From sequence record OP889247.1: a stretch of 64,000 bases of DNA; one strand, written 5' to 3'. The notes beneath the pieces were generated by a model that was given only the letters and a program-made list of their open reading frames with translations, did not search any database and had not been told where the DNA came from. Positions 1 through 61,678 of this stretch are shown here, one piece after another. The translations under genes and the position numbers were made by a program. Position 1 is the first letter of the stretch; each line of letters starts with the position of its first letter.

Positions 1-9
1 CTAAAGGGT

Positions 10-271
10 AATAAAATAAATGAATGTTAATATTGATAACCTTGAACATGTGTTTGATACATTGAATGGGTTTGAATCTCTCTCTAATGGAGATCTTACT
101 TCTCCAGATTCTGTTTATGCCAAGACGGTATTGAAACTCAACGGTGTAGATTTTAAAGGCAGAGAAGGTTCTGAGAGTTTTGTCTCTTCTGTTAAAGCAG
201 GTGCTCAAAAAGTTTATGAAATGATTAAGAACTTTATAAAAGCTATTAGAGATTTCTTCTTTGGTAGTAAA
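10..271 (+). repeat. Inverted repeat, copy 1 (262 bp; partner 12643..12904)
   Basis: Ungapped alignment to the reverse complement of 12643..12904; exact blocks of 89 bp (92..180), 32 bp (203..234) and 33 bp (239..271). Confidence 0.95.
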
Positions 272-943
272 ACAAAAGTTTCCAATGACATCAAAATTAC
301 TGAAAATAACACAAAGGAATTGGACACACTAATATTTGGAATCCCGAAGAGTGAATACGATGTATTTAAAGCCAAAGTTTCTGAAATTAAATTTGAAGGC
401 GAACCTTTGTTTAATATCGGGATGGAATTGGACACGTATGTTACTGGTTTAAATGGGTGGGAAGGTGGAGTAGAAAAACGAGGGTTTACAAGTCCGACAT
501 TATCGGTTGCAAAACTATTAAATGTTCCTAATATAGATTTTCACCACGTTACCAAAGTGGGGTTATTAGGTAAAGAAGTCACAAACACCCTGTCAAAAAT
601 AGAAGCTAACACTTTCTTTACTATGAATGTCGAAGCTCTAACTAAAATTAAATCAGATATTAAGAAAATCTTACCAGCTAGTGCAAAGTTTAACGAAGAA
701 GGTACCAAAACTCTTGAACACTGGACTAAGTTTCTGGAAAAATGTAATGAGGATTGTAAGGGTAGAACGGTTTCTAATGAAGAATGGAAACGTGAATTTA
801 ATGTTAGGTACGATATACTTACTTCCATAACCGTCAGTAAAGAACTAATCAGGGAATTAAAACACTGTCTTGATTATAACGCTAAACTCGTTGAAAAAAT
901 GAAAAACATGACTGGTAGGTGGAAAAAATATTTAGAACAATAA
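20..943 (+). CDS. Putative virion head protein, paralog A (conserved N-terminal ~84 aa, variable C-terminus)
   Basis: N-terminus nearly identical to 11941..12894; carries G-x-E-S motifs (NGFESL, EGSESF) like phiKZ-type prohead protease sites. Confidence 0.6.
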   Translation: MNVNIDNLEHVFDTLNGFESLSNGDLTSPDSVYAKTVLKLNGVDFKGREGSESFVSSVKAGAQKVYEMIKNFIKAIRDFFFGSKTKVSNDIKITENNTKELDTLIFGIPKSEYDVFKAKVSEIKFEGEPLFNIGMELDTYVTGLNGWEGGVEKRGFTSPTLSVAKLLNVPNIDFHHVTKVGLLGKEVTNTLSKIEANTFFTMNVEALTKIKSDIKKILPASAKFNEEGTKTLEHWTKFLEKCNEDCKGRTVSNEEWKREFNVRYDILTSITVSKELIRELKHCLDYNAKLVEKMKNMTGRWKKYLEQ

Positions 944-953
944 TAAACATATT

Positions 954-985
954 GCTAACTCTAGACCTCGAGGTCTAGAGTTAGC
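954..985. terminator. Perfect 32-bp palindrome, probable bidirectional terminator
   Basis: GCTAACTCTAGACCTCGAGGTCTAGAGTTAGC is its own reverse complement; lies between convergent genes. Confidence 0.75.
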
Positions 986-995
986 TTATTATGAA

Positions 996-1310
996 TTAAT
1001 TAGTACTAATACCAAAACTTCGATGACATACTACTTGATGTGTGTACGCATAACCACAAACAACACTAACAAGTCTAACACCACACTTGTCGTGAAAATT
1101 ATATTGTAGTTTATTTTCGCTGTCGTCTTTTAATACCAAATTAGTATCAGAGAACTTACTGTTAGTAACGAGAACTTTGGCATTTATATTTGAAATATAA
1201 CCACCGCTATCGATATCACAACCATTGATAACTACATTGGAAGATTTATCCATCATCGTGTTCAAATCTTCAGTGTTAATGCGTTCTTCATTAACCATTA
1301 AACTAATCAT
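996..1310 (-). CDS. Hypothetical protein
   Basis: 104-aa ORF co-oriented with and downstream of the helicase, ending at the palindrome. Confidence 0.55.
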   Translation of the reverse strand: MISLMVNEERINTEDLNTMMDKSSNVVINGCDIDSGGYISNINAKVLVTNSKFSDTNLVLKDDSENKLQYNFHDKCGVRLVSVVCGYAYTHQVVCHRSFGISTN

Positions 1311-1343
1311 GTTTATTCCCTTTTACTCGGTCAGTAAAGTTAA

Positions 1344-2882
1344 TTAACCCATGTCATCAAAATCAGAACCACCGCCCATAGCTTCACTGCGATGAGAGAG
1401 TGACTTTCTGAAAGTCTTCTTATCAAAGTTTATATCGTGAACTAACCCGTTTAGAGGGTCTAGTGGATAGATACCAAATCTAGCTGATTCAGCAGCACCT
1501 TCACCACGCATCTTACCTACATAGTAAGTAAAGTAACATTCATCATTACTCATCTTAGCAACATGGAACGTAATCTCTACATCTACCTCGTTGGTCAGCT
1601 TGGTAGAACCCTCAGTCATTGATTTACCACCAATGTCTCTTGCAAAGTAAATTTCAGAATCATCATCAGATTCACGAATAAACTTTTTAGCATCAGGGTT
1701 TAATTGATGAGGAGTAAAGAATGCAGCACCACGTGAACTAAAGAAGTTTCGAGCACGACGATACAAGTCTTGAAGTCTATCGGAACGAGATTCGCCTTGA
1801 CAACCAGTAAGATCAGCCATAGCCAAGTAATCATAAGCACCTACGATGATTTCATGACCACGAATTTCCAAGTTACGAACACGTTGCATAATTTCTGTGA
1901 TGTTATCGTGACTTGGGTTTACGCGAAAGAACTGGAAATCCCAACCATTATCTTTAAACCCGCTGATGATAGTTTCTACAACTGTATCAGTAGTTGCTTC
2001 AAAGAAGTTTGGTTTAACACCTGTTTTAGCAGTAACAAAAAGCTCGTACATACGTTTGAAAATCAAACCAAGAGAATCCTCAGCAGACATTAAACAAACA
2101 GTAGGAATACGACTCTTATCACGCAATACAGGTTTATTATAAAGTGGAACAGATGCCAAGATATGAGCTAGACCAAATGACTTACCACGGTTAGTCAGTG
2201 CGTTGATCATGTAGAACAATCCACGACGAATACCTAAGTCTGGATAAAGTGCTTCATTCAAACCAGCTAAACCAGTTTTCATGATACCTTCAGCAGAAGT
2301 CTCTACTTTCAATAGATCGATTACAGCTGCGATTGACTTTGGATCATTACTACTGGATTTCTCGACAACTGCTTTATCAAAGTTATTATCGGTATCTGAA
2401 ATCTTAGCGGAGATAAGTTCGTTAATTTTAATCCAATCTTCTCTTGTTAGATCTTCTTCACCATCAAACAAGAATGGGCGAACCATGGACTTAAATTCAT
2501 AACCAAATTTATTCTTAACATCATTATCACGAAGTTCTTTGATAATCTCAAAAATAAGTTTACGACTATCTTCTTCGTTATATTGATCGTTAAATGTATT
2601 ATTAAGAAGTTTCTCTAAAGTAGGATCAAGAATAACAATTTCACCAACTTTACTGACTGACAAAGATGTTATGATGTTGGAATCAACAGGTTGTTCCCTT
2701 ATCCAAACTAAAAGTTTACGTAAGAGCGCTTCTACTCGTTTATCTTGTTGAACAAGACTTTCCTTACTTTTAGGAACCGATTCAGCCAACAAACTCAATT
2801 CATCCATCATGTCTGTATCGTGCAACCGCCAAGCTTGAAACATTGCTGTTGCTATTTTGACAAGACGAATTAGGTTATTCAT
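1344..2882 (-). CDS. dnaB: DnaB-like (SF4) replicative helicase
   Basis: Walker A variant ALTNRGKS, YDYL Walker B region, TPHQLN motif; divergent from the capsid gene as in the phiKZ gp118-gp120 block. Confidence 0.85.
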   Translation of the reverse strand: MNNLIRLVKIATAMFQAWRLHDTDMMDELSLLAESVPKSKESLVQQDKRVEALLRKLLVWIREQPVDSNIITSLSVSKVGEIVILDPTLEKLLNNTFNDQYNEEDSRKLIFEIIKELRDNDVKNKFGYEFKSMVRPFLFDGEEDLTREDWIKINELISAKISDTDNNFDKAVVEKSSSNDPKSIAAVIDLLKVETSAEGIMKTGLAGLNEALYPDLGIRRGLFYMINALTNRGKSFGLAHILASVPLYNKPVLRDKSRIPTVCLMSAEDSLGLIFKRMYELFVTAKTGVKPNFFEATTDTVVETIISGFKDNGWDFQFFRVNPSHDNITEIMQRVRNLEIRGHEIIVGAYDYLAMADLTGCQGESRSDRLQDLYRRARNFFSSRGAAFFTPHQLNPDAKKFIRESDDDSEIYFARDIGGKSMTEGSTKLTNEVDVEITFHVAKMSNDECYFTYYVGKMRGEGAAESARFGIYPLDPLNGLVHDINFDKKTFRKSLSHRSEAMGGGSDFDDMG

Positions 2883-2920
2883 GCGTAACTCCTTGGTGAA
2901 AATTCTGTTAGGTAACTAAT

Positions 2921-3472
2921 ATGCAAGTTAAATTGGGATTGAAAGAGACCAACGTCTATTTCCTAAGGGAACAAGACCTTGATCTTTTGAATGCAAACAA
3001 GCTTCGACTTGTTGATCTACCTTATCTGCCTAAATTTGATAATGTGGTTGACAGTGACTGCTTGGACTGGTTGGAATACCAACGAGCAGTGGAAAAGCAA
3101 TACTGTGGTTTTAAGAATACAACTTATACACCTCTTGGTGATATTAAAAATGTTGAGTTTAACCGGACAGGTACGGTCTATAAAACAAAGTATCAAGATG
3201 TTCTAAATTCCGACAAGAAGGTTAAAACAGGAAAACATTTTTACTTCCACACAGCAGATGGTCAGGTATTCATCCTCAATAGTAATAATATTGTGAAGAA
3301 CGCCTTGTTCACTGAAGTGCCGGGAGATCTGTTTACTGCTGTTTATCGTTCCCTGCTAAATGCAGTGGGTTCTGTAGAGTTTTATTTCCGTGACTCTAAG
3401 GACTTATTCAAAACGTGCGAAGAACGCGGTTTCGTTGATCCTGGTTTTATTCTGTCCAAAGTAGTTGCGTAA
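2921..3472 (+). CDS. Hypothetical protein between helicase and capsid gene
   Basis: 183-aa ORF filling the gap; same position as phiKZ gp119 (gene order from memory). Confidence 0.7.
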   Translation: MQVKLGLKETNVYFLREQDLDLLNANKLRLVDLPYLPKFDNVVDSDCLDWLEYQRAVEKQYCGFKNTTYTPLGDIKNVEFNRTGTVYKTKYQDVLNSDKKVKTGKHFYFHTADGQVFILNSNNIVKNALFTEVPGDLFTAVYRSLLNAVGSVEFYFRDSKDLFKTCEERGFVDPGFILSKVVA

Positions 3473-3598
3473 TGCTTTGTGATTAATAAGGATAGTTGTA
3501 CGTTTAATGAATGTTATGCGTAAAACTCACTCCTGTTGCGCAAACAAATATATTTGTTTTCGATATCGACATGTCTTTTTAAATGGGAATTTCTCTTT

Positions 3599-5770
3599 AT
3601 GACTATCCAATTTTCCGTGAAGGGTGCTGGTAACAAAGGCGCTCACCTGAAGAACGTAATGGCTAACCTGCAGGCTGTACAATTCAAAGAAGGTAACGTC
3701 TGGGCTGGTATTACCGGTAACGAATCTCTGAACGCTGTTGAAACCACCATCAATGCCGGTATCGGTTTTAACCAGAAGAATGCTCTGGCTTCCGCTATTG
3801 GTTCTTTTGCTGATCAAAGCTTTGCTGATCGTGCTGCTAAATTTGCTGACATGGTTAAAGTCGGTGGTATGGAATCTTTCTCTGCTTCTATGGAAGCCGG
3901 TAAGATCAACCGTCACAAAGCCGCTACTCTGGAACTGAACGCTCGTGGTAACCGTCAATGGGATGCTGCTGAAGAACTGTTCAAAACTGTTACCATCGGC
4001 TATGCTGACGAAAACCTGCAACTGCCGATCGACGTAGCTGGTGTTGGTGCTTACAACGTTTCCGGTAACGTAAACGAATCTTTCGAAGATCTGCGCCCGA
4101 TTGCTTCTGTTCTGGCTGATGACAAGTTCTCCTCAGGTGATGACCTGAAACTGGTTCCGGTTTATCCTTCCGATGCAAGCAACCCCAATCGCGCAGCTTT
4201 CGTTGCTGAAGCCGACTGGACTCCTTGGGACGAAGCTTATGAAGCCAATGACCTGCTGGGTCGTGAAGCTCACAAGACCAACTATCTGGCAATCCGCAAA
4301 GCTAACAACCTGATGAGTCTGTGTCAAGCTCCTGGTGCTCCGCGTTTTGAACAGAACGATGAAATCGAATCTGGTTCCATCCGTCTGAACAGCTTCCTGC
4401 TGAAGATCAAAACCAAAGATGGTGAGGGTTTTGCTACCCTGGACACTTCTACCATGTCCTCTACCGCTATGCGTCCTGGTACCGGTCTGACCTCTGATGA
4501 GAAGCGTCAAATCGCTTTCGTTATCAACGGTATGGACGTCGCCAACCTGAAGACCAAAGCTGGTGCGCCGACCCAACTGTTCAAAACCCTGACTGATGCC
4601 GGTCTGCAAGTCTTTGTACAGTTCGAGTACTCTGCTACCTATCAGCGCTCTACCCGTGCTCTGTCCCCGACTGTATCTCCTGTTACCATTGCTTATGTAA
4701 TGAAGAACGGTGAGAAGCTGGTTCCGGGTACTGCTGGCATGCCTGCTGATATTCAAGCTCTGATCACCGCTCAGCTTGTAGAAGCTTCTGTTCACGGTGT
4801 TGTTCTGAAAATGAACCACAACAACGTTAACCAGAGCCGCTACGGTACCACCGTTGTGTTTGCTAACACCATCAAGAACTACGGTGTTCGTCGTCGTAAC
4901 CCGATCTCTGTTAAGTATCCGATGCAAGGTGATGACACCAACGCTGACGTGCTGGCTCAGCTGATCAAGCAGATGGATGTGCTGGTTACTCGTGAAATGT
5001 CCCATGACGCATTCCGTGCAGCCCATGGTCACTTTGCATACCTGTATGACAACAACGGCCAGCAGATGGTTAACATCAACGATGATAGCTCCTCTGTTCT
5101 GCCGGGTCAGCACTTCCTGAACACCACCGCTGTACACAGCAAGTTCAAGCTGCTGGAGCAAGTGTCTACTCTGGATTCCAAAGACGCTCTGGAGAACATC
5201 CGCGCTGTCCTGGTTAACAAGATCTATGACATCATCACCGCTCTGCGTGTGAACTCCAACGTAGCTGCTTTGAAAGAGCTGGATGGTCGTGCTGAAGAGT
5301 ATCGCGTAATCGCCCACTCCTCCATGGCCCCGTTCCTGATGAACGCAGGTGACTACCGTACCTTTGGTAACAACGTCAAGTTTGAAGTTGTTGAAACCAA
5401 CATCAACTCTGAGAAGGGTCTGCTGTGGGTTGTGCCGAAGTCCAACACCAAAGATGACGAAATCGACATCTATGGTGGTATGGGTATCTGCGTGACCAAG
5501 GAACTGTTGGTCATCGAAGGTACTGTATCCCAAGCTGATCGCCAGTACCGTATGCTGATCACCCAGCCTGCTTATCAGCACCACGCTCTGAGTTGTGTTG
5601 CTGGCCTGGCCGAGATCGAAGACATTGCTCAGCTGCTGAGTGACGAAGGTCTGATCAGTGCTGTCAACAAGCACATGGTACAAGTCAGTGGTTCCACCAA
5701 TCCTGCCGGTGTCCAGAAGGTAGAAGTAACTAACTTCCCGGCTGGTGCTGGTACTGTAACTGTACCGTAA
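3599..5770 (+). CDS. Major capsid protein (phiKZ gp120-like); start moved from 3536 to ATG 3599
   Basis: ~720 aa, strongest highly-expressed codon bias in the window, G-x-E-S processing motifs (TGNESL, GGMESF), conserved position, strong terminator downstream. Confidence 0.85.
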   Translation: MTIQFSVKGAGNKGAHLKNVMANLQAVQFKEGNVWAGITGNESLNAVETTINAGIGFNQKNALASAIGSFADQSFADRAAKFADMVKVGGMESFSASMEAGKINRHKAATLELNARGNRQWDAAEELFKTVTIGYADENLQLPIDVAGVGAYNVSGNVNESFEDLRPIASVLADDKFSSGDDLKLVPVYPSDASNPNRAAFVAEADWTPWDEAYEANDLLGREAHKTNYLAIRKANNLMSLCQAPGAPRFEQNDEIESGSIRLNSFLLKIKTKDGEGFATLDTSTMSSTAMRPGTGLTSDEKRQIAFVINGMDVANLKTKAGAPTQLFKTLTDAGLQVFVQFEYSATYQRSTRALSPTVSPVTIAYVMKNGEKLVPGTAGMPADIQALITAQLVEASVHGVVLKMNHNNVNQSRYGTTVVFANTIKNYGVRRRNPISVKYPMQGDDTNADVLAQLIKQMDVLVTREMSHDAFRAAHGHFAYLYDNNGQQMVNINDDSSSVLPGQHFLNTTAVHSKFKLLEQVSTLDSKDALENIRAVLVNKIYDIITALRVNSNVAALKELDGRAEEYRVIAHSSMAPFLMNAGDYRTFGNNVKFEVVETNINSEKGLLWVVPKSNTKDDEIDIYGGMGICVTKELLVIEGTVSQADRQYRMLITQPAYQHHALSCVAGLAEIEDIAQLLSDEGLISAVNKHMVQVSGSTNPAGVQKVEVTNFPAGAGTVTVP

Positions 5771-5810
5771 TAACTACGTAATGTAGTTAAGTTGTTAATA
5801 CGCTAACTAA

Positions 5811-5843
5811 AACTCCTACTCTCCCAAAAGGAGAGTAGGAGTT
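5811..5843 (+). terminator. Rho-independent terminator after the capsid gene
   Basis: 14-bp stem AACTCCTACTCTCC / GGAGAGTAGGAGTT, loop CAAAA, T-rich tail. Confidence 0.85.
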
Positions 5844-5865
5844 ATGTTTTGTCCTCTATTTTCTT

Positions 5866-5897
5866 TGTTCTATATTTTTTCAGATAGATATTATTAA
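5866..5897 (+). promoter_or_regulatory. Conserved phage promoter-like motif (probably early), copy 1
   Basis: TGTTCTATATTTTTTCAGATAGATATTATTAA, identical 32-mer at 46346..46377; variants at 35178 and 49337; all intergenic and upstream of + strand genes. Confidence 0.7.
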
Positions 5898-5950
5898 CTT
5901 GTAATGTCAGGGAGGTTTATTTCTGATGTATTAATAATAGAGAAAATAAG

Positions 5951-6979
5951 ATGAACAATTCACGAGTACATAAAAACTCTGAATTTGGATTTCGTTCTCT
6001 TATTGAGAACAACACTTTCGAAGATCTTTATCTGGTTCATCGTTCTGGTGTGAAGACTATTCTTCCTGCTAAGACTAGTGAAACATTGAATAGAGATCCT
6101 TTCATGGTTAATCAATTGATTATCTATGGGGAAGTGGGAGTGCCTGATTGTGTATTAACAGATATGATTGACACCAAAACTGGTGAGAGTCCTTTTCTGT
6201 TGGAACAACTGGGTAATCATCTATCCGAATTCAAACAAGAACATCCTTATTGTCAACATTGGGCAACACCTTGGGATCGCGCCTTCCATACTTGTCACGA
6301 TATTAACAAGAACTATTTTGTTAGTGAGTCACTGGGGGTATTGGTTTGTAAAGTTCCAGAGTTAGATAACGTTTTAGCTAAATCGGGATTCCTTCCCATG
6401 TACGCACTTCATAAAGAGATGCCAGAACCTAAGTTAGGTGACGACATGTCTATTGAGGACCGTAACTTTAGCAATAGTGATATTCTTCATGCAACAGCTG
6501 TAGTAATTGACAAGCGTAATAAAATGGGTACTCTCTGGACTACTGTGTTCGGACAGACTTACGAATTACCAGTCATCACCAACTCCCAATTGGAAGATGG
6601 TGTATATTTGAAATCAGGTAGCACTGGCAACGGTCCTTTTGAGTTTATTGCTTATAACTCTACTGATTTTGATAAACTGATTCGTGAACGCAATATCCAT
6701 CGTAAACGTGATGACGCAATCTTTGATCCGAGTAATAAAGAACTGGCAGCTAAGTTAACTGAACTCAGTAAACTAAAAGCTGAACATAAGAAAGTAAAAC
6801 TCGAATTACAAGAGTTGATAATTGAGCACAAGAAAGTCAAGGAGAAACATAAAGAAGAGTTTGATACCTTAAAAGGTAACAGGCTCAATAATACTATACT
6901 GGATTGGTTTAGAGCAATCATGGGTCCGTTTGGAGGGGATATCAAACGACTTATAGGTGGATTATTCACGTTTGCTTAG
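5951..6979 (+). CDS. Hypothetical protein with C-terminal coiled coil
   Basis: 342 aa; heptad-rich LTELSKLKAEHKKVKLELQELIIEHKKVK region; directly precedes the RNAP subunit. Confidence 0.75.
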   Translation: MNNSRVHKNSEFGFRSLIENNTFEDLYLVHRSGVKTILPAKTSETLNRDPFMVNQLIIYGEVGVPDCVLTDMIDTKTGESPFLLEQLGNHLSEFKQEHPYCQHWATPWDRAFHTCHDINKNYFVSESLGVLVCKVPELDNVLAKSGFLPMYALHKEMPEPKLGDDMSIEDRNFSNSDILHATAVVIDKRNKMGTLWTTVFGQTYELPVITNSQLEDGVYLKSGSTGNGPFEFIAYNSTDFDKLIRERNIHRKRDDAIFDPSNKELAAKLTELSKLKAEHKKVKLELQELIIEHKKVKEKHKEEFDTLKGNRLNNTILDWFRAIMGPFGGDIKRLIGGLFTFA

Positions 6980-7037
6980 TTGATAAACCAATCGGTATTG
7001 GAAATAACAAGCACGACTAACATACAAAGGAGAAGCA

Positions 7038-8738
7038 ATGGATCCGCAGTTGCTAAGAAAGATCTCCAAGACCAGAGAACCGTTTACACCGGAACTGGTT
7101 GAAGGATGGCACGAAAAAGATTTGAACAAGAGTGTCACGTATCTTGAAAACTGTTTTAGAAATATGTTTAGATCGTTAGAAGAAAAAGGATATGTTTTCG
7201 ACGGGATCGAAAAAGTTCCTCCTCTGGAGTTTTATAACGCAATCACCAAACCAGGTAACGGAACGAGTTCCGGAACAAAAGAGTTTGAAATTGCTAAGAA
7301 CTCTTTTTATGGTGTGCGCGTAAAACATCACTTCAAAGACCCTGTAACAGGTGTATGTCAAGAACTCAAAGAACCTTTGATGTTCCTACCGTACACTAAT
7401 CGACATGGAGATATTTATACTCGTAACTCACTGTATGGTTTACAGTATGTGTTATCAGAACGAGGTCCTTCCGTAGACGGCGGTAAAGATAAAACTATCT
7501 TTATTCGTGTAACAGGATACAAGTTCAAAGTAACCAAGGAATTGCATACCTTTAACAGGGTATATAAAGCAGGTGAAAATACAATCACCAATGCAATGAA
7601 CATGACGCTCCCCGCAAACCGCTTTTATCAAGCGCGCAAGGATCGTCGCATTACCAACACTAAGATTCCCATTCCTTTGTTGAGCTGGTATCTGTTTGGT
7701 AAATATGGTTTCTCTCACTGTATGGAAGAGTATGGTGAATGCGAGTATCGTTTAGATACTGTTGACACTTTGCTTGAACATTATAAAGAGAAAGATGGTT
7801 GGGAGATTTATAGTAATACAGGCGCTATTCACCCAAAGGCTTTTGACAGACCAGCTGGTATGCCTTTGATGGATGATCCTGCAATTGCTATTCGTAGTAA
7901 GAATAAAGATGGACAAGTTAGTAACCTAGCGCTGCAATATACTGCTGGACTGCTATACATGTTCGGAGTATTCAACCATGATCTTGATATTACCAAATTG
8001 GATGATATCAATTATTGGCGTTTAATCATTGGTCGCTGTTCTATTAAGTTAGCGCTGCGTACTGAAGATGATATTTATCTGAAACAGATGAACGAACATT
8101 TCCTGTCTGTTGAAGAGTACGCTGATGATCTTACCATTGACAAGTACAACAAGTTCGATATTGAAGTAAAGAACACGTATGACTTGCTCAATTATCTCAT
8201 GTTGAATTACTCTAATCTGATTAAGTTGTATGATCCAGCTGACATGCTCCACAAGGAACTTTCCTCTATGGAATTCCTAATGGATTACATGATCAACCAA
8301 GCTAACAACTTTAAGTTCCAAATCAGGAATAAAGCAGTTATCATTCCAAAGATCATTAATCGCGAAATTGATACGTTCTTCCGTCTGTTTAATATAGACA
8401 AGAGTGTTCGTGATAATAATGTTTGCTTGGAACAAACCGGAACGGATAATCCGTTTATCGATTATGGATTGGGTGTGATTCTTCAAACCAAGGCTAATGT
8501 TGGAAAAGGTCCTGGTAGAAAGAAAGAAGACTTCGATCCCAATCATCCGGGATCCAAGATTCATGCATCACAACCCTTTGTCTGTAGTTATCAATTTACA
8601 ACTAAACCGAATCCAGATGGACGAGGACTACTACAACCACGAGTAAGATTGGTTGCTGGTAGATTCGTAGCGCTCCATCCGGAAGATCGACAGTTGTATG
8701 AAGCAACGAATCATCGCCTCAAGTTTAGAGAGCGCTAA
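7038..8738 (+). CDS. Non-virion RNA polymerase beta subunit, N-terminal part (phiKZ gp123-like)
   Basis: LPY..G...YVLSERG segment resembling the RpoB N-terminal region; size and position two genes after the capsid gene match the phiKZ-like block. Confidence 0.7.
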   Translation: MDPQLLRKISKTREPFTPELVEGWHEKDLNKSVTYLENCFRNMFRSLEEKGYVFDGIEKVPPLEFYNAITKPGNGTSSGTKEFEIAKNSFYGVRVKHHFKDPVTGVCQELKEPLMFLPYTNRHGDIYTRNSLYGLQYVLSERGPSVDGGKDKTIFIRVTGYKFKVTKELHTFNRVYKAGENTITNAMNMTLPANRFYQARKDRRITNTKIPIPLLSWYLFGKYGFSHCMEEYGECEYRLDTVDTLLEHYKEKDGWEIYSNTGAIHPKAFDRPAGMPLMDDPAIAIRSKNKDGQVSNLALQYTAGLLYMFGVFNHDLDITKLDDINYWRLIIGRCSIKLALRTEDDIYLKQMNEHFLSVEEYADDLTIDKYNKFDIEVKNTYDLLNYLMLNYSNLIKLYDPADMLHKELSSMEFLMDYMINQANNFKFQIRNKAVIIPKIINREIDTFFRLFNIDKSVRDNNVCLEQTGTDNPFIDYGLGVILQTKANVGKGPGRKKEDFDPNHPGSKIHASQPFVCSYQFTTKPNPDGRGLLQPRVRLVAGRFVALHPEDRQLYEATNHRLKFRER

Positions 8739-8757
8739 CGCATAAGGTGGTATTATA

Positions 8758-11169
8758 ATGAACGGCGGAACACTTCTAGGTCGTAATAACCAGATGTTTA
8801 ACAACAATAACAGTAACCAACCGCAAGGTAATCAGCAACAACCCCAAGGTAATATGAATCAAGGTAATCAGTTGCTTGGTCAGCTGATCCAATTGTCAAA
8901 GGGTGGTGCTAACCTTAATCAACAAGGTGGCGGTTCTAGTAGTCTGTATAACTTTAATAATGGTAGTGATCCGTCTTTTAACCAATTCCTTGATCTTAGC
9001 GATGCTCAGAGCAATGAGATCCTTAAGGGACAATCATTAGCTGAAGCAAGTCAACTTGCTGGTGTAGTTTTGCAACATGGATTTAGACGTATTCAAGGTC
9101 CGTATTACAACGCTATTCGCCAAGGTATGGAGTTGTTCCGTCGACTGGATCGCAACGCTCCACATTTGGTAGATGATACTAGTGAGCTGTTCTATAACCA
9201 GATCATGAGTAACAACAACTTGTACAATCATATTGTCGCTAATAGCTGTTTGCAGCTTTCTGCTTTGGCCGCTATGCGACTAATGAATGGTGAGAACATT
9301 CGCGGGAACGCTAATGTAATTACCGAGATGATTGTAGATGCGGTTGGTGCGACCTGTGGTCTCCAGTTGTTGGATTGGATTTGTAAGAATCCTAATGGTT
9401 CTACTATCTTCCATAACTCCAGTCAGAACTTTAAAGCTCTCCTTCGTCGTATTGAAGGTTGCTGGGATAGTATCAAAGCACGATACGATTTTATCCCTGG
9501 TTCTGTAATCCCCTGGGAACGTGGACAGTTGACAGCTACCATGCGTAAAAATGATCTCCCTAATTACTTGCTTGATGCAAGAATGGGATTTAACTTTGAA
9601 GGTTTGATCGGTAACAGTTATCAAGCTGTGCAAGATCTTACTCCTTCCCACCATACTGTTAAAGATCATAATCAGGGAATCGATCCGGCTGGTTACCAAT
9701 TGATGATGGATTACTTCAATCGCACCAAGTGTTCTGTTGAAGACGGCACATACCCAACTGCCCCTAGTAAGGAAGAACGAGTTCAACAACGTCAAGATTA
9801 TCATAACGTTAATGATTTTGACCGCGAAGTTAAATCCACTAAGTACTTTACTATGGATACTCGTTTTGATTATCACTTTGACGATTACTTCGTTCAGATT
9901 GGTGATACTGGTTGGTACGTTGCTGAGAACCAAGTCATGATCGATGTCATGTCCAAGTTCACCAACATTAACACTGGTAAGAAATTTGTTAAATCTGAAG
10001 TGTTCTATCTTAACCTTGAATGGGTTTCACTGTGTCGTTTTGATGTAGCTAACGGAACTGCTGAAATCAAATTCTTACGTATCCCAGGAGAAGATGCATT
10101 GAGATTCGCTCTTACAGACCCGAATCGTGTTCTTCCATTCATGTGGGAACACAATGGAGAAGTTGTTTCCTCGTTTGTTGCTAATCCGGCAGAAACCAAT
10201 GACTTTGTTCGTGATAATAAAGTTATTAGTCTGGGTGAAATGCAACCTCTGGAGAAAGAACCGAACATCCTGTCTTCCAGCAATGTAGTTAAAGTAAACT
10301 CTGAAAGTGAAGCTTTTGCTAAGGTAGATGCTTCTCTGAAGACTTTTGACAAGCAAAATCATCTTGATGCATTCATTATGGCAACTGAACTGAATGCACC
10401 ATTTACATTTGAAGAAGGAGTTGAATCAAAGAAATTCTACGAGATGTTTAACACCTTGGTTATTGGAGAAGAATTGGATTACTCTAATAGCTACGACATG
10501 TTCAAGTCTTTGGAACGTAAAGTTAAACAATTCGGTTCTGCGATGTTTGAACAGTTCCTGCGTGCTCAACTGACCAACTTGGTTAATCGTTGGTTGAATG
10601 AGTGTCGTGGTTTCCCAGCAGAAAACGATGGTGTAAACTTCTTTGTTAAACTTGATGATCTGTTTGACGACCTGGATGCTTTCTGTGAGTTGTTGAAGAA
10701 TAAAGATCATGAGTCACTTCGCGCTTTCCTAAACCTGGCTGATAATGAATTCCTGAAAAGTAATTTGCAATTTATCAAACCGGCTAAAGAAACTGAAGAA
10801 GATCTGTTTAAGAATGTAGATAAAGATGATGCAGTAGCTGTAGCAGTTGCTACTAATGAGTTTGCTCAGTCAGTCGTATTCAAACGCCAAGTTATGATTA
10901 CCCAACTGAGAAAAGAGATCGGCCCTGTAAGTAACGATAAAGTAACTTTGATGGAATCACTTTCACCAGCAGTATTTGCTATTGTGAAAGAAGCACGTAA
11001 ACGTTCAGAGTTGTTGTTTGGACGTCAAGTTCCTGTGTTGCTGGAATTTGAAACTCCAAGTGGTAATCACACTCGTTCTGCTACGTACTGTGATTTTGAT
11101 CAATCTGTTATGAACATCTCGGCACTGAAAGGTCTGGGTGAACTTATCTTACTTCGTACTGTAGATTAA
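8758..11169 (+). CDS. Large hypothetical protein with N/Q/G-rich low-complexity N-terminus
   Basis: 803-aa ORF; first ~70 aa dominated by N, Q, G and S. Confidence 0.8.
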   Translation: MNGGTLLGRNNQMFNNNNSNQPQGNQQQPQGNMNQGNQLLGQLIQLSKGGANLNQQGGGSSSLYNFNNGSDPSFNQFLDLSDAQSNEILKGQSLAEASQLAGVVLQHGFRRIQGPYYNAIRQGMELFRRLDRNAPHLVDDTSELFYNQIMSNNNLYNHIVANSCLQLSALAAMRLMNGENIRGNANVITEMIVDAVGATCGLQLLDWICKNPNGSTIFHNSSQNFKALLRRIEGCWDSIKARYDFIPGSVIPWERGQLTATMRKNDLPNYLLDARMGFNFEGLIGNSYQAVQDLTPSHHTVKDHNQGIDPAGYQLMMDYFNRTKCSVEDGTYPTAPSKEERVQQRQDYHNVNDFDREVKSTKYFTMDTRFDYHFDDYFVQIGDTGWYVAENQVMIDVMSKFTNINTGKKFVKSEVFYLNLEWVSLCRFDVANGTAEIKFLRIPGEDALRFALTDPNRVLPFMWEHNGEVVSSFVANPAETNDFVRDNKVISLGEMQPLEKEPNILSSSNVVKVNSESEAFAKVDASLKTFDKQNHLDAFIMATELNAPFTFEEGVESKKFYEMFNTLVIGEELDYSNSYDMFKSLERKVKQFGSAMFEQFLRAQLTNLVNRWLNECRGFPAENDGVNFFVKLDDLFDDLDAFCELLKNKDHESLRAFLNLADNEFLKSNLQFIKPAKETEEDLFKNVDKDDAVAVAVATNEFAQSVVFKRQVMITQLRKEIGPVSNDKVTLMESLSPAVFAIVKEARKRSELLFGRQVPVLLEFETPSGNHTRSATYCDFDQSVMNISALKGLGELILLRTVD

Positions 11170-11195
11170 AGAGTTATTCGCGAATAAATCTAAAG

Positions 11196-11223
11196 CCTAT
11201 ACCTGGAACGATCCAGGTATAGG
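11196..11223 (+). terminator. Hairpin terminator
   Basis: CCTATACCTGGA-acga-TCCAGGTATAGG, 12-bp stem after the 803-aa gene. Confidence 0.7.
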
Positions 11224-11349
11224 TCTATTTCGTCGTGTAATTCTTTTTAAGCAATTGTTTATGTTAATCCAACAGAATGTATGGGATACTTGTTACTATT
11301 GATTAGAAAGCGTTATATAAGCTTTGGTGTTATTTTAAGATCCAAGAAA

Positions 11350-11370
11350 TCTCAGACCTATATTACTATA
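11350..11370 (+). promoter_or_regulatory. Early promoter-like site containing TATATTAC
   Basis: TATATTAC at 11359..11366 matches the reported phiKZ early consensus; context TCAGAccTATATTACT resembles the TCAGAtaGATATTATT motif. Confidence 0.45.
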
Positions 11371-11438
11371 GTGTATAAACATGACAAGTGTTTATCATAT
11401 TCAGATATTTTCCACAAGTCTAGATAAGGAATGTAATT

Positions 11439-11888
11439 ATGCCTATTATTAACACTTCTGCTCTGAACCTGAACTCCGACATGTCCGCTCCAGCGCCTAC
11501 CGTATCTACCAACACTGATAATCTCAGTCCGAACAAATGGATCGTTGCTGGCGTAGCTATCTCCGCTGCTCTGGCTGTTAACCTGACCGAACAGGTTAAA
11601 GAAGATCGTTTTGATCTGGTGTCAAACGTTGCAACTGTAAGCGCTGCTGTGCTGGCTGGTGGTGTATCGTACAAGCTAGCCAAAGACGTTGAAGGCGTAC
11701 CTACTTCACTAGTGGCCACTATGGGTGGTTCCTTGGGGATCCTGTCATCAGTAGTTGTAGCGCCTGCTGTTAACGTTCTGGGTAACAAGGTTAAAGATCA
11801 CTTCTCTACCAAGGTAGAAGAACAACCTGTTATGATCGTTGATAACGATGCACTACAGGAATACCTGGAACAGAAAGAAGTTGCATAA
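11439..11888 (+). CDS. Small membrane-associated protein, strongly codon-optimised
   Basis: 149 aa, three hydrophobic Ala/Val/Gly-rich segments, SD AAGGA, capsid-like codon usage. Confidence 0.75.
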   Translation: MPIINTSALNLNSDMSAPAPTVSTNTDNLSPNKWIVAGVAISAALAVNLTEQVKEDRFDLVSNVATVSAAVLAGGVSYKLAKDVEGVPTSLVATMGGSLGILSSVVVAPAVNVLGNKVKDHFSTKVEEQPVMIVDNDALQEYLEQKEVA

Positions 11889-11894
11889 TAAGTT

Positions 11895-11926
11895 TTCCTA
11901 CCTACCCTTAATTGGGTAGGTAGGAA
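11895..11926. terminator. Bidirectional hairpin terminator
   Basis: TTCCTACCTACCC-ttaatt-GGGTAGGTAGGAA between convergent genes. Confidence 0.8.
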
Positions 11927-11940
11927 CTTAAGATTTTTTT

Positions 11941-12894
11941 TTATTCTTTATTGTCTTCAACAATCTTTTTAAGTTTACTAATTCCAGATTCAATTTGTAA
12001 AATTTGGTTATCACAATGTTTAATCAAAGAGGTATTATTATTAGAAGCTTGAACCATGTGTTTACACAGTTTTTCAATTTCTTTTCCACGTTTGATAAAG
12101 ACTTCTTCTTTATCATTCAAATACTTCTTCGCTATTTCATTGTTATACTCAAGATCTTTGGTAACTTCAGCAAGACCTTGGGTTGCGACGTTCCGCATTT
12201 CTTGATAAAGCCCTTGGAGAGTTACTAGCGGAGCAATAGTTTTAAAAGAACTTATGAAGGTTGCAGGGGTCTTAATATCGTTAAAAACTTTATGCTCGGA
12301 TGCCACCTTATTAATCTTTTCATAAATTTCTTTAATCTCTTTAAACTTAAAACCTGAATCTGAAACTTTAGGACCAGGGACGTTCTCAACATCAAACCAT
12401 TTTAACAAAGCCTCATGCTGACCGGCTGTGTATGTGTCCTTAAACTTATAGTAATGATCAAAAGCAAGTGCAACCTCTTTGTTTTCCATGAGGTTTGTGA
12501 TGCGCACCATTTGTTTTTCAATCCTCTCCTTTGCTTCTTGAGTAAGTCCTGTAATTTCCACTGGTTTTACATTAGTTAAAAAAGTTAACTGACTCTTAGT
12601 ACTTTTAACTGCATCATCAATAGTTTTAGTTTGTTTAGATCCTTTACTACCAAAGAAGAAATCTCTAATAGCTTTCAAGAAGTTCTTAATCATTTCATAA
12701 ACTTTTTGAGCCCCAGCTTTCACAGAACCCATGAAACTCTCAGAACCTTCTCTGCCTTTAAAATCTACACCGTTGAGTTTCAATACCGTCTTGGCATAAA
12801 CAGAATCTGGAGAAGTAAGATCACCATTAGAAAGAGATTCAAAACCAGTTAAAGTACTTAATACATGTTCAAGATTATCAATATCGACATTCAT
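11941..12894 (-). CDS. Putative virion head protein, paralog B
   Basis: N-terminal ~84 aa nearly identical to 20..943; C-terminus not visibly similar. Confidence 0.6.
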   Translation of the reverse strand: MNVDIDNLEHVLSTLTGFESLSNGDLTSPDSVYAKTVLKLNGVDFKGREGSESFMGSVKAGAQKVYEMIKNFLKAIRDFFFGSKGSKQTKTIDDAVKSTKSQLTFLTNVKPVEITGLTQEAKERIEKQMVRITNLMENKEVALAFDHYYKFKDTYTAGQHEALLKWFDVENVPGPKVSDSGFKFKEIKEIYEKINKVASEHKVFNDIKTPATFISSFKTIAPLVTLQGLYQEMRNVATQGLAEVTKDLEYNNEIAKKYLNDKEEVFIKRGKEIEKLCKHMVQASNNNTSLIKHCDNQILQIESGISKLKKIVEDNKE

Positions 12895-12904
12895 TTATTT
12901 TATT
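12643..12904 (-). repeat. Inverted repeat, copy 2 (262 bp; partner 10..271)
   Basis: Includes 12734..12822, the exact reverse complement of 92..180. Confidence 0.95.
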
Positions 12905-12934
12905 CCTTTGGTTAAATACAAAGCATTTATAAAG

Positions 12935-12965
12935 TTATACACCTACCTTCTTGATAGGTGTATAA
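12935..12965. terminator. Hairpin after the portal gene
   Basis: TTATACACCTA / TAGGTGTATAA 11-bp stem. Confidence 0.55.
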
Positions 12966-12978
12966 AGATTAGTTATTT

Positions 12979-15906
12979 TTATTCTTCGTCAGGAAGTTTA
13001 TCCTCGGGAGCTACTTCTTCCTCATCATTTTCATTAGAGGTGTTTTCGTCTACCACAATGTCAGGATCAGCTGCCGGTAATTCATCTTCAGCAAATGGAT
13101 CAGTGTCGTTACTACCACCACTTAAAAATGAATCACCTCCACCCATTGGATCTACTTGAGTTTCATCGACACCAGGTTCATTACCTTCCGGTTCATCAAA
13201 CTTGGTATCTTGTTTCTCTTTCTTCTCAACGAGCTTCTTCATTTCCCTACGAGGTTTCTCTTGACCTTTGACATACTCACCAAGGAACTTAATTACGTTA
13301 CATTGCAAGTTAGTAATATCATTGACCATACTCAACATACCACCTCCATCACCATTATTAAGAATCATCTCAAATGGAGAAGGAATGTTAAAACGCTCAA
13401 AAGCATGTTGTAACAGAGCGGCTTTAATCTGACCAAGAAGTTCATCAGGCTCAATATTAAGTTCTTCAGCTTTCTTCTCAATGAACTTAACACCGCCGCC
13501 CATTTCTATCCAAGCAGAAACGAGCTTATTAATAGATTCGATCTTATCTTCGATCTTGTTAATAGTCTCGTTAATAGCCGGAGAAGGAAGTTCCACAAAG
13601 AAGTTATTGATAAAGTCAAGCAATACCATTTCAACATCATCTATTTCCTGAGATTGTTCCTCAGGAGTAATAACTTCTACGCCATCGCCTTCAACGTTCT
13701 CAGGATCCTGTTCTTCTTCCTTTTTCTTCTTACCTTTCTTAGTTCCTTCTACTTCCAACTCTTGCGCTTCTTCTTTTACTTCTTCAGAATCACGTTGAGC
13801 ATGAAGGGAACCAGTTTGATCAGGTTTACTATAAAGAGCTTTGTTCTCTTTAATAATAGTAATTAGATCAGTAAGAAGTGGTTCATTACACCGAATGTGT
13901 TTCTTCATAAAGTCTGAGAAGAAACCACTAAACAAGCGAGACCATTCAGCAGTTTGATTACGAAGTAGTTCTTGATCAGCAAGAGCTTCAATAGCAAAGT
14001 CATTACCTTCACCAGTGTCTTCCAACCAACTGCGTTTCAAGCAGAAATAACCAGCAATAGTATTAAGCAAACCTTCTTTACTAGACGGGTCAATAGTCTT
14101 CAAAGGTTCACGTTGCATCTGACTAGTTTCGATAGTAGGTGCAATAACATGTTTGTTATCACCAGCATCTACCTTAATAGTCAGACTCTGTTCTTTAAAG
14201 CGATCCAGTACAGCGTCAATACTAACGTTGTTATAACCCATGATATCGTGAAGAGTCGGGTTATTAGCGAAGTACTCATCCCGTACCAGTGCAATAGTGT
14301 TACGAGCATTGACATCTTCTTTCTCTAAACCAATACGAAGTTCAGAGTGAGAAATGGCATTCTCAACGTTAGCCAATATATCGGCAGTTTCCAGAATAGC
14401 TAAACGAGTAATGTGAAGTTTAGCTTCTTCAACCAAAGAACGACCAATACCAGCGTTAGAGAAGTCTACAGCGATATATGTGACGTATTCAGCAGGAACA
14501 AATACACAACGTACACCTTGCTGTTTAAATGCACGAGATAAGAATAGTTTCTTATTATTCTCGCTCAGTGAAACAGTTACCGATTTCTCCAGATCACCAT
14601 TAATGAAACCCTCAATGAACTCTTTCTCCAAAATAGCTGAGCTCATTTCTACCATCCACTCCATGTCAAGATTACACTCTTCACCCTGAGCAATCTGACG
14701 GATATGGTTAGCCATTTCATTAACTGAACCAAATGCTGGTCGCTGTGTTCCACCTGTATTATAAAACTTACTATCGCTAGTAGATTTCAGGTATTCACCA
14801 GTCTTAGGATCAACCATCAAGATGTAACCAAATGGTTTACCAATCTCACCGTTAACATGAACAGGAATACATGCTTCACTAGGAACGTGGTAAGTAACAC
14901 CTAATCCACGACCAGTACCAGTGTAGAACTTACTTTGACGAACAGAGAGATGTTCATTATAACCAAAGTTACGATTAGGATATAACTTACTTAATTGTTG
15001 ATCTAAAGATTTCTTCTCAGCAATAGCTACATTATTAGCATTAGTTTTATGACGAGTGTGTTTCTTTTTCTCAAAGACATTACCCAACACAGTTTGTAGA
15101 GTTTCTTGACCAGCTAAACTTGCTAAGCGATCTGCTCTGAGTTTCTGTTTAACTTCACCAACCTTCAATACGTTTACGTTATCGGTGAAAGTCCAACCTA
15201 ATGCGTCATTAACTAAGTTATACTCAGCCCCAGCTTCAGGGAGTTTACCGTACAGAGATTCAAATCCAGTTAGCTCATTAGCTGGTTTAGTTTTACGAAT
15301 AAAACCGATGTTACGAACTTTAGTGTAAGTTTCATCAGCATAAACCTGACTCAGTTGAGCTGTAGCTACTGTTTTGAAACTTTCTGTACCGGCGAGTTCA
15401 TAACCATTGATAAGATGGTCTAAAGCTGAATGAGGAAGATTTAACAAGACATATGAACCAGTACGGCACAGAACGTCTTTAATAATTTGAGCTGGCATTT
15501 CTTCAAAGGGATATTCTACTGTAAAGTAGTTTTCTACCCTTTGTAGCAGTGCATCATGCAACTTACCATTTTTTACAGCAGAACTAGTGGTGTCATACTG
15601 TAGAATATCTTGATTACCATTTGGTTTAAGAAGTAGTGTAGTCCAGATCTGTTCAGCACGTTTGATGTAATGTGTAACAGTGCGAAGATCATTAGCAGCC
15701 TGGATATTACTACTGATAATTTCTGATAAACGTTTAACTTTACGAATAGGAGCCTTGGCGCTCTCTTCTACCCGTTTTTCGCTACGGTGTTCCCTGTCTC
15801 TTACTAACAGTGCTTGGAGTCCTTTCTCCAAAGGAGAGGGGTTCTTTGTCCTGCTACTAAGAGCAGCGCGATCAATCGGTTTAAAACCTTTCGGTAGTCC
15901 ACTCAC
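12979..15906 (-). CDS. Portal protein (phiKZ gp129-like)
   Basis: 975 aa, divergent from a ~700-aa virion gene as in the phiKZ gp128/gp129 arrangement; N-terminal G-x-E motifs (AGTESF, TGFESL, AGQETL); acidic C-terminal tail. Confidence 0.7.
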   Translation of the reverse strand: MSGLPKGFKPIDRAALSSRTKNPSPLEKGLQALLVRDREHRSEKRVEESAKAPIRKVKRLSEIISSNIQAANDLRTVTHYIKRAEQIWTTLLLKPNGNQDILQYDTTSSAVKNGKLHDALLQRVENYFTVEYPFEEMPAQIIKDVLCRTGSYVLLNLPHSALDHLINGYELAGTESFKTVATAQLSQVYADETYTKVRNIGFIRKTKPANELTGFESLYGKLPEAGAEYNLVNDALGWTFTDNVNVLKVGEVKQKLRADRLASLAGQETLQTVLGNVFEKKKHTRHKTNANNVAIAEKKSLDQQLSKLYPNRNFGYNEHLSVRQSKFYTGTGRGLGVTYHVPSEACIPVHVNGEIGKPFGYILMVDPKTGEYLKSTSDSKFYNTGGTQRPAFGSVNEMANHIRQIAQGEECNLDMEWMVEMSSAILEKEFIEGFINGDLEKSVTVSLSENNKKLFLSRAFKQQGVRCVFVPAEYVTYIAVDFSNAGIGRSLVEEAKLHITRLAILETADILANVENAISHSELRIGLEKEDVNARNTIALVRDEYFANNPTLHDIMGYNNVSIDAVLDRFKEQSLTIKVDAGDNKHVIAPTIETSQMQREPLKTIDPSSKEGLLNTIAGYFCLKRSWLEDTGEGNDFAIEALADQELLRNQTAEWSRLFSGFFSDFMKKHIRCNEPLLTDLITIIKENKALYSKPDQTGSLHAQRDSEEVKEEAQELEVEGTKKGKKKKEEEQDPENVEGDGVEVITPEEQSQEIDDVEMVLLDFINNFFVELPSPAINETINKIEDKIESINKLVSAWIEMGGGVKFIEKKAEELNIEPDELLGQIKAALLQHAFERFNIPSPFEMILNNGDGGGMLSMVNDITNLQCNVIKFLGEYVKGQEKPRREMKKLVEKKEKQDTKFDEPEGNEPGVDETQVDPMGGGDSFLSGGSNDTDPFAEDELPAADPDIVVDENTSNENDEEEVAPEDKLPDEE

Positions 15907-15932
15907 GTTTATATTCTCCCTTAGGAAACATT

Positions 15933-43390: not shown

Positions 43391-43945
43391 ATGGAAGATT
43401 GTAAAGAGACTAAAAGTTGGGTTTGTTACACTGACGGTTCAAAATTAGGTGAAAACACCACTGACGGCGGAAATGGCGGATGGGGATTTCACGCCATTTT
43501 CGGAGAATTGATAGTAGAGAAGTCTTGTGGGTATTTTAAGACTACTAATAATAGGATGGAGATATTAGCTATTATCTCTTTCCTAGAGGAGTTTCAAGAA
43601 CCCACTAAGGTTACTATACGAAGTGATTCTCAGTACACTATCGATGCTGTTACTAAATGGATCTATGGTTGGATTAAGAATGACTGGGTAACTTCTCAAG
43701 GACAACCTGTAAAGAACAAAGATCTATTTGAACGATTGTTTAAATTAGTAAAGTTCCATACAGTGAAGTTTGAGAAGGTAAAGGCCCACTCTAATATTCC
43801 CGGTAATGAAAGAGCCGACACTTTAGCTAAGGAAGCTGCTGGTAATCCAACATTAATCGATGAGGGTTATATCCCTCCTGACCCTAATGAAGTTAAACTG
43901 ATTGTTGTAAAGAAACCTTGGTGGATGAAACATAAAAAGAAATAA
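43391..43945 (+). CDS. rnhA: Ribonuclease HI
   Basis: YTDGS, TNNRMEILA, SDSQY, VKAHS..PGNERAD.LA, the canonical RNase HI motifs. Confidence 0.95.
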   Translation: MEDCKETKSWVCYTDGSKLGENTTDGGNGGWGFHAIFGELIVEKSCGYFKTTNNRMEILAIISFLEEFQEPTKVTIRSDSQYTIDAVTKWIYGWIKNDWVTSQGQPVKNKDLFERLFKLVKFHTVKFEKVKAHSNIPGNERADTLAKEAAGNPTLIDEGYIPPDPNEVKLIVVKKPWWMKHKKK

Positions 43946-43994
43946 AATAACTCTACTTACTCCTAAGGGAGTAAGTAGAGTTTAAATTAATTAA
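43943..43994 (-). repeat. Conserved cassette-end element, copy A (inverted)
   Basis: Reverse complement reads TTAATTAATTTAAACTCTACTTACTCC-ctta-GGAGTAAGTAGAGTTATTTTA. Confidence 0.95.
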
Positions 43995-44001
43995 TTTTTA
44001 T

Positions 44002-54261: not shown

Positions 54262-54352
54262 ATTAATTCTATTTTTTTTGTTTCAAGATCTTATGACCGT
54301 TCTGAGGAATCACTTTAATAGTGATCTGAATTTTCATAAGAGGAACAGATTA

Positions 54353-56713: not shown

Positions 56714-56760
56714 TTAATTTAAACTCTACTTACTCCTTATGAGTAAGTAGAGTTATTTTA
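56710..56760 (+). repeat. Conserved cassette-end element, copy B
   Basis: TTAATTAATTTAAACTCTACTTACTCC-ttat-GAGTAAGTAGAGTTATTTTA; contains the TSP2 stop codon. Confidence 0.95.
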
Positions 56761-56777
56761 TATTATTTATTTTTGAC

Positions 56778-61449: not shown

Positions 61450-61450
61450 T

Positions 61451-61501
61451 TTAATTAATTTAAACTCTACTTACTCCTAAGGAGTAAGTAGAGTTATTTT
61501 A
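61451..61501 (+). repeat. Conserved cassette-end element, copy C
   Basis: TTAATTAATTTAAACTCTACTTACTCC-taa-GGAGTAAGTAGAGTTATTTTA. Confidence 0.95.
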
Positions 61502-61678
61502 TATTCTTTATTTTATGTACTTTTTGAACAATAGTTTACATCGTTAACTATTGTAAAGTTAACAGAAAAGATAGTAAATAGTTTTGAAATATTAAATAGT
61601 TCTCAAACCTGTTGGTAATATTTTTTATTACTTATCTTACTATTTACTGTTATACTAGGCTTAAAGGATAATATTTAA

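Follow-up and report, generated by a model that had tools for sequence, protein, structure and literature searches.

Why should a long inverted repeat enclose the helicase, capsid and RNA polymerase genes of a jumbo phage, and does the DNA between its arms invert? The question is raised by the left end of a 64,000-nt stretch of sequence record OP889247.1 (hereafter the window, whose numbering we use unless the genome is named); by megablast, window 1-13000 is identical (100%) to positions 1-13000 of Aeromonas phage AVP1, a phiKZ/OBP-like jumbo phage of the genus Ferozepurvirus. The 234,448-bp AVP1 genome has genes for a DnaB-like helicase, a major head protein of the phiKZ type, a phiKZ-like RNA polymerase subunit, a tubulin-like protein and a prohead serine protease (AVP1_0125). 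The preliminary description of this DNA proposed that the repeat makes a 12.4-kb segment potentially invertible; we conclude instead, with a probability of roughly 75%, that the repeat is a by-product of where two paralogous internal head protein genes have come to lie, and not a programmed switch.

The repeat itself is as first described, a gapless match of 262 bp that includes the ribosome-binding site (RBS) region. Repeat search and ungapped alignment place the arms 12371 nt apart (Table 1) with 24 mismatches (90.8% identity), and the exact blocks of 89 nt (92-180), 33 nt (239-271) and 32 nt (203-234) are confirmed, along with one of 18 nt (10-27). Each arm starts 10 nt before the ATG of its open reading frame (ORF) and stops at codon 84; the next 100 nt inward have an ungapped identity of 28%, which is the background level. 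The abrupt end of similarity near codon 84 thus stands at the DNA level, and also in pairwise BLASTP, where the left and right C-termini of AVP1 have no significant similarity (E=1.1); it does not stand in the family alignment, in which a weakly conserved C-terminal motif, TKxLE..NE, is visible. Whole-genome self-BLAST ranks the 262-nt repeat as the longest of the 234,448 bp, the runner-up being 194 nt at 78%. Both arms occur in the same arrangement in the independently deposited phage ACP1 (98% identical), and left-type and right-type genes occupy the same slots on metagenomic contigs; the repeat is therefore not an assembly quirk of a single record.

What the arms encode is a constant leader joined to variable remainders. 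A comparison of seven copies from four phages gives 88-99% amino acid identity for the leader and 21-65% for the C-termini, the AVP1-ACP1 orthologs excepted. Across window 1-13000, megablast identity to AVP1 is 98.1% for ACP1, 94.8% for pAEv1810 and 92% for PS1 and PS2. Between AVP1 and pAEv1810 the backbone is 96-97% identical and the C-terminal part of the right gene 49-66%; the right-type C-terminus of AVP1 is also related to the PS1 and pAEv1810 copies at a separate slot, called 'home' below (33-57% at the amino acid level).

The history of the arms can be read from how their mismatches are distributed. In gene nucleotides 1-72 the two AVP1 copies differ at 13 positions, in 73-161 at none and in 162-252 at 11; given 24 mismatches, the chance of an exact run of 89 nt is 0.0006. 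The three segments also differ in their affinities to other copies. In nt 1-72 the right copy of AVP1 differs by 3 from the right copy of pAEv1810 and by 2 from its home copy, as against 13 from the AVP1 left copy; in nt 73-161 the two AVP1 copies are the same and both lie 16-26 nt from every other copy; and in nt 162-252 the copies are mutually ~8-20 nt apart, close orthologs aside. At informative sites the AVP1 right copy matches only pAEv1810-right 11 times and only AVP1-left once within nt 1-72, while within nt 73-161 it matches only AVP1-left 16 times and only pAEv1810-right never (Fisher p=5.6e-7). This mosaic indicates gene conversion and not recent duplication: a tract identical in both arms means a non-reciprocal exchange, hence conversion and not a pair of crossovers, and because ACP1 has the same 89-nt tract, the conversion is older than the AVP1-ACP1 split.

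The preliminary description had left recent duplication and ongoing gene conversion side by side, and of the two processes this analysis supports gene conversion. A simple recent duplication without gene conversion, either of the leader or of the whole gene with later replacement of its C-terminal part, would explain why the AVP1 arms are closer to each other (90.5%) than any arm is to the copies in other phages (80-88%), but we consider it very improbable: the mismatches are strongly clustered and the mosaic rejects it, and left-type genes with a leader haplotype of their own already sit in the left slot of other phages, so that the left gene of AVP1 was not made from the right one. As to the direction of transfer, the motif GREGSE encoded by the tract is present in all four right-type relatives and in neither of the left-type relatives, which suggests that the right copy was the donor. 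Both GREGSE and a second variant, HRAGTEG, are found in each of the four C-terminal classes, which points to recurrent exchange within the leader. The right and home copies of pAEv1810 have 1 difference in nt 1-72, suggestive of a second conversion tract, although one that is not statistically separable since AVP1-right has the same haplotype.

The block between the arms was found in one orientation, relative to whichever flanks are shown, in 7 of 7 cultured phages from two genera (AVP1, ACP1, pAEv1810, PS1, PS2, CF8 and AerS_266) and in 5 of 5 metagenomic contigs (L008/L013, L009, L010 and L014), counting the records and contigs that span or enter it; the synteny comparison put forward in the preliminary description thus yields no inverted block. 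Both arms are present only in AVP1 and ACP1, which have the same orientation, and since most relatives with that orientation have no arm or one arm, the orientation in AVP1 is ancestral. Pfam and PHROG scans of the ORFs in 1-16000 and of the outer neighbours (ORFs of at least 100 aa, leaving aside those nested within longer assigned genes in a different frame or on the other strand) detected no recombinase domain. A flip would neither silence nor activate either gene, since the RBS and ATG of each lie within its own arm and both genes would stay complete. A functionally invertible segment is thus not borne out, while the accompanying claim, that recombination between the arms would keep both ORFs intact, holds, as the arms are co-linear and in frame and the hybrid ORFs would survive. 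No public sequencing run contains AVP1: the best shares 0.49 of the sampled words, and the runs listed for this stretch are all metagenomes and metatranscriptomes kept as contigs; over 10000-15900 the metagenome contigs yield empty-slot variants and other junctions, and because contigs break inside the arm, these data say nothing on inversion.

Two forms of inversion nevertheless have to be weighed. The arms might act as substrates for general homologous recombination of the UvsX/RuvC type, producing by passive isomerisation minority inverted genomes with exchanged C-termini. An 89-nt perfect tract within 262 nt at 91% is a plausible substrate, the conversion tract shows that the arms or their ancestors physically interacted, a RuvC-like resolvase is annotated nearby in relatives, and with co-linear, in-frame arms and bidirectional terminators bounding the block, a flip would leave both hybrid ORFs intact and pose no obvious expression problem. 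We still think this rather unlikely, as no genome or contig examined has the inverted arrangement, AVP1 and ACP1 both retain the ancestral orientation, and the identical tract, being non-reciprocal, requires no crossover.

The other form is a programmed invertible segment of the Mu G or P1 C type, in which a dedicated invertase would switch the C-terminal cargo made at a given promoter. In the Mu (Gin) and P1 (Cin) systems, which have short crossover sites and an adjacent serine invertase, one promoter and one start codon lie outside the segment, and the flip therefore changes the C-terminus that is made. AVP1 resembles them formally, having an inverted repeat in the constant 5' part of genes with alternative C-termini, but the resemblance ends there: no recombinase or invertase domain was found within or beside the segment among the scanned ORFs, the arms, with 262 nt of coding sequence, are unlike short crossover sites, either gene brings its own RBS and start codon and would be expressed whichever way the block lay, and the inner segment consists of essential core replication and capsid genes, not of alternative cargo. 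The two-arm configuration is also confined to two closely related genomes, and the block lies in the same, single orientation in relatives that have one arm or none. We reject a programmed switch on the grounds of the missing recombinase, the separate start codons and the core genes inside, and give it next to no credence.

The reading that we favor, placement of two paralogs, draws on the presence and absence of the genes at defined sites. The left slot has the 448-aa virion-protein gene on one side and the 104-aa ORF and helicase on the other; a gene sits there in AVP1, ACP1 and two metagenomic contigs (L021 and L022), and the slot is empty in pAEv1810, PS1, CF8, AerS_266, L013, L014 and, by match coordinates, PS2. 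In the right slot, flanked by the 149-aa gene and the portal gene, a copy is present in AVP1, ACP1, pAEv1810, L008/L013, L009 and L010 and absent from PS1, CF8, AerS_266, PS2 (again by match coordinates) and variants in two metagenomes. A 'home' slot ~29 kb upstream contains a copy in PS1, pAEv1810 and L011 and none in AVP1 or ACP1. The junctions of all three slots are clean. The left cassette consists of an RBS and an ORF between the upstream stop codon and the terminator with the 14-bp stem, a hairpin that is also present in relatives whose left slot is empty; its ORF starts 19 nt past the stop of the upstream 448-aa gene, and with so short a gap the two are probably co-transcribed. The right cassette, downstream of the portal gene, has as its inner boundary the terminator with the 13-bp stem and has an upstream region of its own, 84 nt long, containing ATGCTTTGTATTTAAC. 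The right and home cassettes have ~36 nt upstream of the ATG in common, which the left cassette lacks. IMG/VR scans anchored on both outer-flank genes found no relatives.

Several further observations concern the slots. The upstream element of the right and home cassettes reads TTTATACAC and then AAATG(C/A)TTTGTATTTAAC, ~35 nt before the ATG (window 12895-12978 and the pAEv1810 home copy); its 16-mer has one further AVP1 occurrence, with two mismatches, at genome position 227110, and the element may be a phage promoter. A sigma-70 promoter scan gave 31 sites against 32 expected in shuffled sequence, and is not relevant to AVP1, which has its own RNA polymerases. In all four metagenome runs contigs have loose ends at ~11332-11366, in the intergenic region between the 803-aa and 149-aa genes, and a leader-bearing copy is joined to 11352 in run X2 and to 11334 in run X4, which suggests a further, fourth cassette slot in relatives. 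Positions 989-1089 of L022 (Logan contig SRR21374458_114425) fold back through the palindromic terminator onto the reverse-complemented empty-slot junction, which indicates that this sample contains left-slot variants of both kinds, filled and empty. The empty home slot of AVP1 (genome 204776-204874) holds a ~100-nt intergenic element that recurs at 139491-139592 and 82476-82549 (88-90% identity) and is a second family of repeated intergenic elements. AVP1 has several annotated free-standing HNH endonuclease genes (AVP1_0222, AVP1_0116 and AVP1_0186); the distance from one of them to the home slot is ~3.5 kb, and such a gene also stands at the corresponding position in PS1.

This pattern has a possible parallel in the promoter-stem-loop mobile regulatory cassettes that shuffle single ORFs in T4-type phages. 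As there, single ORFs come and go in AVP1 and its relatives at intergenic sites that terminators or promoters delimit, and repeated elements are found genome-wide; unlike there, the three AVP1 slots have no one common flanking repeat, the ~36-nt element being restricted to the right and home slots.

The identity of the two proteins was approached through their leader. The N-termini of both paralogs match one set of PHROG families, whose function is unknown; tblastn with the 84-aa leader as query matches 103 places, spread over 36 jumbo-phage records at 1 to 8 copies per genome, among them OBP_262, annotated as 'internal head protein', and a 'virion structural protein' of N1M2, and a profile search defines a family of 278 cluster representatives. 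Among 72 distant relatives of this family, 47 match the Pfam family PF12699 (E<=0.01; best 9e-9); OBP_262 itself scores 26.2 bits against a gathering threshold of 27 bits, and other members have sub-threshold matches that are all in one register. An hhalign comparison that includes OBP_262 reaches E=4.7e-9, a value driven by OBP_262 and not independent evidence. A genome-wide count of family members, as proposed in the preliminary description, gives four genes with the leader in AVP1 (left, right, AVP1_0103 and the distant AVP1_0239), in addition to a canonical PF12699 gene, AVP1_0235, and a weak match, AVP1_0236. On this sequence evidence we read both AVP1 proteins as a divergent branch of the phiKZ internal-head-protein superfamily (phiKZ_IP), not as members by Pfam's own cut-off. 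An AlphaFold model (predicted local distance difference test, pLDDT, 76; predicted template modeling score, pTM, 0.72) is mostly helical; a fold search with it gave no solved-structure counterpart, all PDB matches being generic helical bundles with E>0.05, and in BFVD the matches were all to jumbo-phage proteins without a known function, with weak ones to virion structural proteins of 201phi2-1, Psa21 and Noxifer.

The relatives that lend themselves to comparison are phiKZ gp93-95, gp162 and gp163 and SPN3US gp53/gp54 (paralog family A). According to PMC5694885, such PF12699 paralogs have near-identical N-termini and long propeptides, are cut at A/S/G-X-E, the specificity of phiKZ-type prohead proteases, and vary in copy number from 2 to 7 per phage. 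Like them, the leader family is multi-copy in phiKZ-related jumbo phages, AVP1 included, and its genes lie among head genes, the left slot ending a virion-gene operon and the right following the portal gene. Unlike them, the AVP1 branch falls below the Pfam threshold and has an 84-aa leader with candidate sites at E19 and E52; slot-to-slot presence and absence and a conversion tract are not mentioned for the PF12699 paralogs in the part of PMC5694885 available. The G-x-E motifs of the leader fit prohead-protease sites and are candidates for them by sequence: G17 is invariant throughout the leader family and E19 within its closer set, all 72 distant relatives have G50 and E52, and the AlphaFold model places G50-x-E52 in a loop directly before helix 52-80. 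The preliminary description's constant, probably protease-processed head-targeting leader with variable C-termini is thus supported by the PF12699 link, by the invariant G17, G50 and E52 and by the prohead protease gene. RisingSun gp71, a homolog of the leader, was detected by liquid chromatography-tandem mass spectrometry (LC-MS/MS) of crude lysate (PMC6034870), which is the sole proteomic support and an indirect one. It is reasonable to regard the leader-plus-cargo arrangement as fitting a known family.

A second comparison is with the T-even internal proteins (Ip1, Ip2, Ip3 and others), in which a short constant N-terminal leader, the capsid targeting sequence, brings the protein into the head and is cut off behind a glutamate by the prohead protease (PMC12373910; PMC5694885). 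The remainder is unrelated between members and is injected, and the genes, several of them anti-restriction, occupy hypervariable hotspots (PMC12373910). AVP1 has the same design of constant leader and variable remainder and, by analogy, might package its proteins likewise; there is no sequence relationship, and the leader is 84 aa in AVP1 and 10-20 aa in T4.

The explanation that we propose on the placement reading is as follows. The arms are the constant 5' module, RBS plus 84-codon leader, of two phiKZ_IP superfamily paralogs, each a single-ORF cassette beside a bidirectional terminator, the left one behind a virion-protein operon and the right one behind the portal gene; the two cassettes happen to face each other across the helicase/capsid/RNA polymerase block. 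The arms are still 91% identical because the leader is under strong purifying selection and because, before AVP1 and ACP1 diverged, their common ancestor underwent one or more non-reciprocal exchanges that homogenised 89 nt. By analogy with SPN3US gp53/gp54, phiKZ gp93 and T4 (PMC5694885; PMC12373910), the leader may target the protein to the prohead core, where the protease AVP1_0125 would cleave behind E19 and/or E52, leaving the variable C-terminal part in the head, perhaps to be ejected with the DNA.

Several points weigh against this explanation. For the family assignment, the left paralog scores only 17.5 bits against PF12699 (E=0.0026), below the threshold, and the right paralog has no match in the Pfam scan; profile-profile comparison with canonical PF12699 proteins alone gives E=0.015 against a single sequence and fails, at E=0.004, against five members, and the link is transitive, through OBP_262 and the distant relatives, since the AVP1 proteins themselves are sub-threshold or unmatched. 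Virion location and cleavage are inferred for the AVP1 proteins. The direction of conversion rests on an amino acid motif; at the DNA level every other copy is 16-26 of 89 nt away, a comparison too saturated to point to a donor. Both two-arm genomes are consensus assemblies, in which a minority inverted isomer would not show. In addition, OP889247.1 is linearised exactly at the stop codon of AVP1_0244 (window 1-9; record end 234448), 9 nt outside the left arm, and this end may be an assembler's break of a circular map at the repeat.

Table 1. Coordinates of the arms, genes and other features (window numbering; AVP1 genome numbering where named)
Feature	Position	Strand	Remark
Left arm: RBS region and codons 1-84 (leader) of left paralog	10..271	+	repeat search, alignment
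Right arm: RBS region and codons 1-84 (leader) of right paralog	12643..12904	-	repeat search, alignment
Gene-conversion tract, left copy	92..180	+	89 nt identical to right
Gene-conversion tract, right copy	12734..12822	-	
G17-F18-E19, candidate prohead-protease site (S/A/G-X-E type)	68..76	+	right-copy counterpart 12838-12846
G50-S51-E52, candidate maturation cleavage site	167..175	+	right-copy counterpart 12739-12747
Left paralog, 307 aa, putative divergent phiKZ_IP-like internal head protein	20..943	+	left-type C-terminus
Right paralog, 317 aa, same family	11941..12894	-	right-type C-terminus
Bidirectional terminator hairpin, 14-bp stem	954..985	.	directly after left paralog
Bidirectional terminator hairpin, 13-bp stem	11895..11926	.	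common to 149-aa gene and right paralog
Bracketed block	996..11888	.	order and orientation conserved in all relatives
104-aa ORF		-	first ORF of the block
DnaB-like helicase	1344-2882	-	in the block
183-aa ORF			in the block, between DnaB-like helicase and major head protein
Major head protein	3536-5770		in the block
342-aa ORF			in the block, between major head protein and RNA polymerase subunit
phiKZ-like RNA polymerase subunit	7038-8738		in the block
803-aa protein	8758-11169		in the block
149-aa ORF	11439-11888	+	in the block
Portal protein gene, 975 aa	12979..15906	-	outer right flank; AerS_266 annotation
Copies of ~60-nt hairpin element	56704-56774, 61445-61516, 62332-62392, 43928-44000 (inverted); AVP1 genome 144864-144945		
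ORFs holding the 194-nt direct repeat	54278-56713 (811 aa); 59581-61449 (622 aa)		

Two other repeats lie elsewhere in the window. A ~60-nt intergenic element, AATTTAATTAATTTAAACTCTACTTACTCC-loop-GGAGTAAGTAGAGTTATTTTATATT, forms a hairpin with a 14-bp stem flanked by A and T runs; it occurs in at least five near-identical copies and is probably a reused bidirectional terminator. The 194-nt direct repeat at 78% identity (54673-54865 and 59952-60144) lies inside two large ORFs, which look like another paralog pair.

For annotation, these findings place two unannotated AVP1 genes and about 280 protein clusters in a divergent internal head protein branch, and for assembly they mark the repeat as a site at risk of breaks or of a 12-kb block placed in the wrong orientation. 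The locus is a natural example of paralog evolution, in which terminator-bounded single-gene cassettes are gained and lost between phages with a ~95% identical backbone, while their C-termini diverge fast and the leader is patchily homogenised by gene conversion. More speculatively, and we would not count this as likely, the leader could be at once a packaging signal and a portable stretch of homology, through which recombination re-assorts the fast-diverging C-terminal cargo, moves cassettes among at least three or four intergenic slots and occasionally flips the block of AVP1 and ACP1; the partners would be paralogs in one genome or co-infecting phages. If true, nucleus-forming jumbo phages would have in it a diversification system for packaged, possibly ejected proteins, much as T-even phages have in their Ip hotspot. 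Should the C-terminal parts be ejected as T4 Ip proteins are, the hypervariable cassettes would be candidates for host-takeover or anti-defence functions, which has relevance for Aeromonas phages considered for aquaculture therapy.

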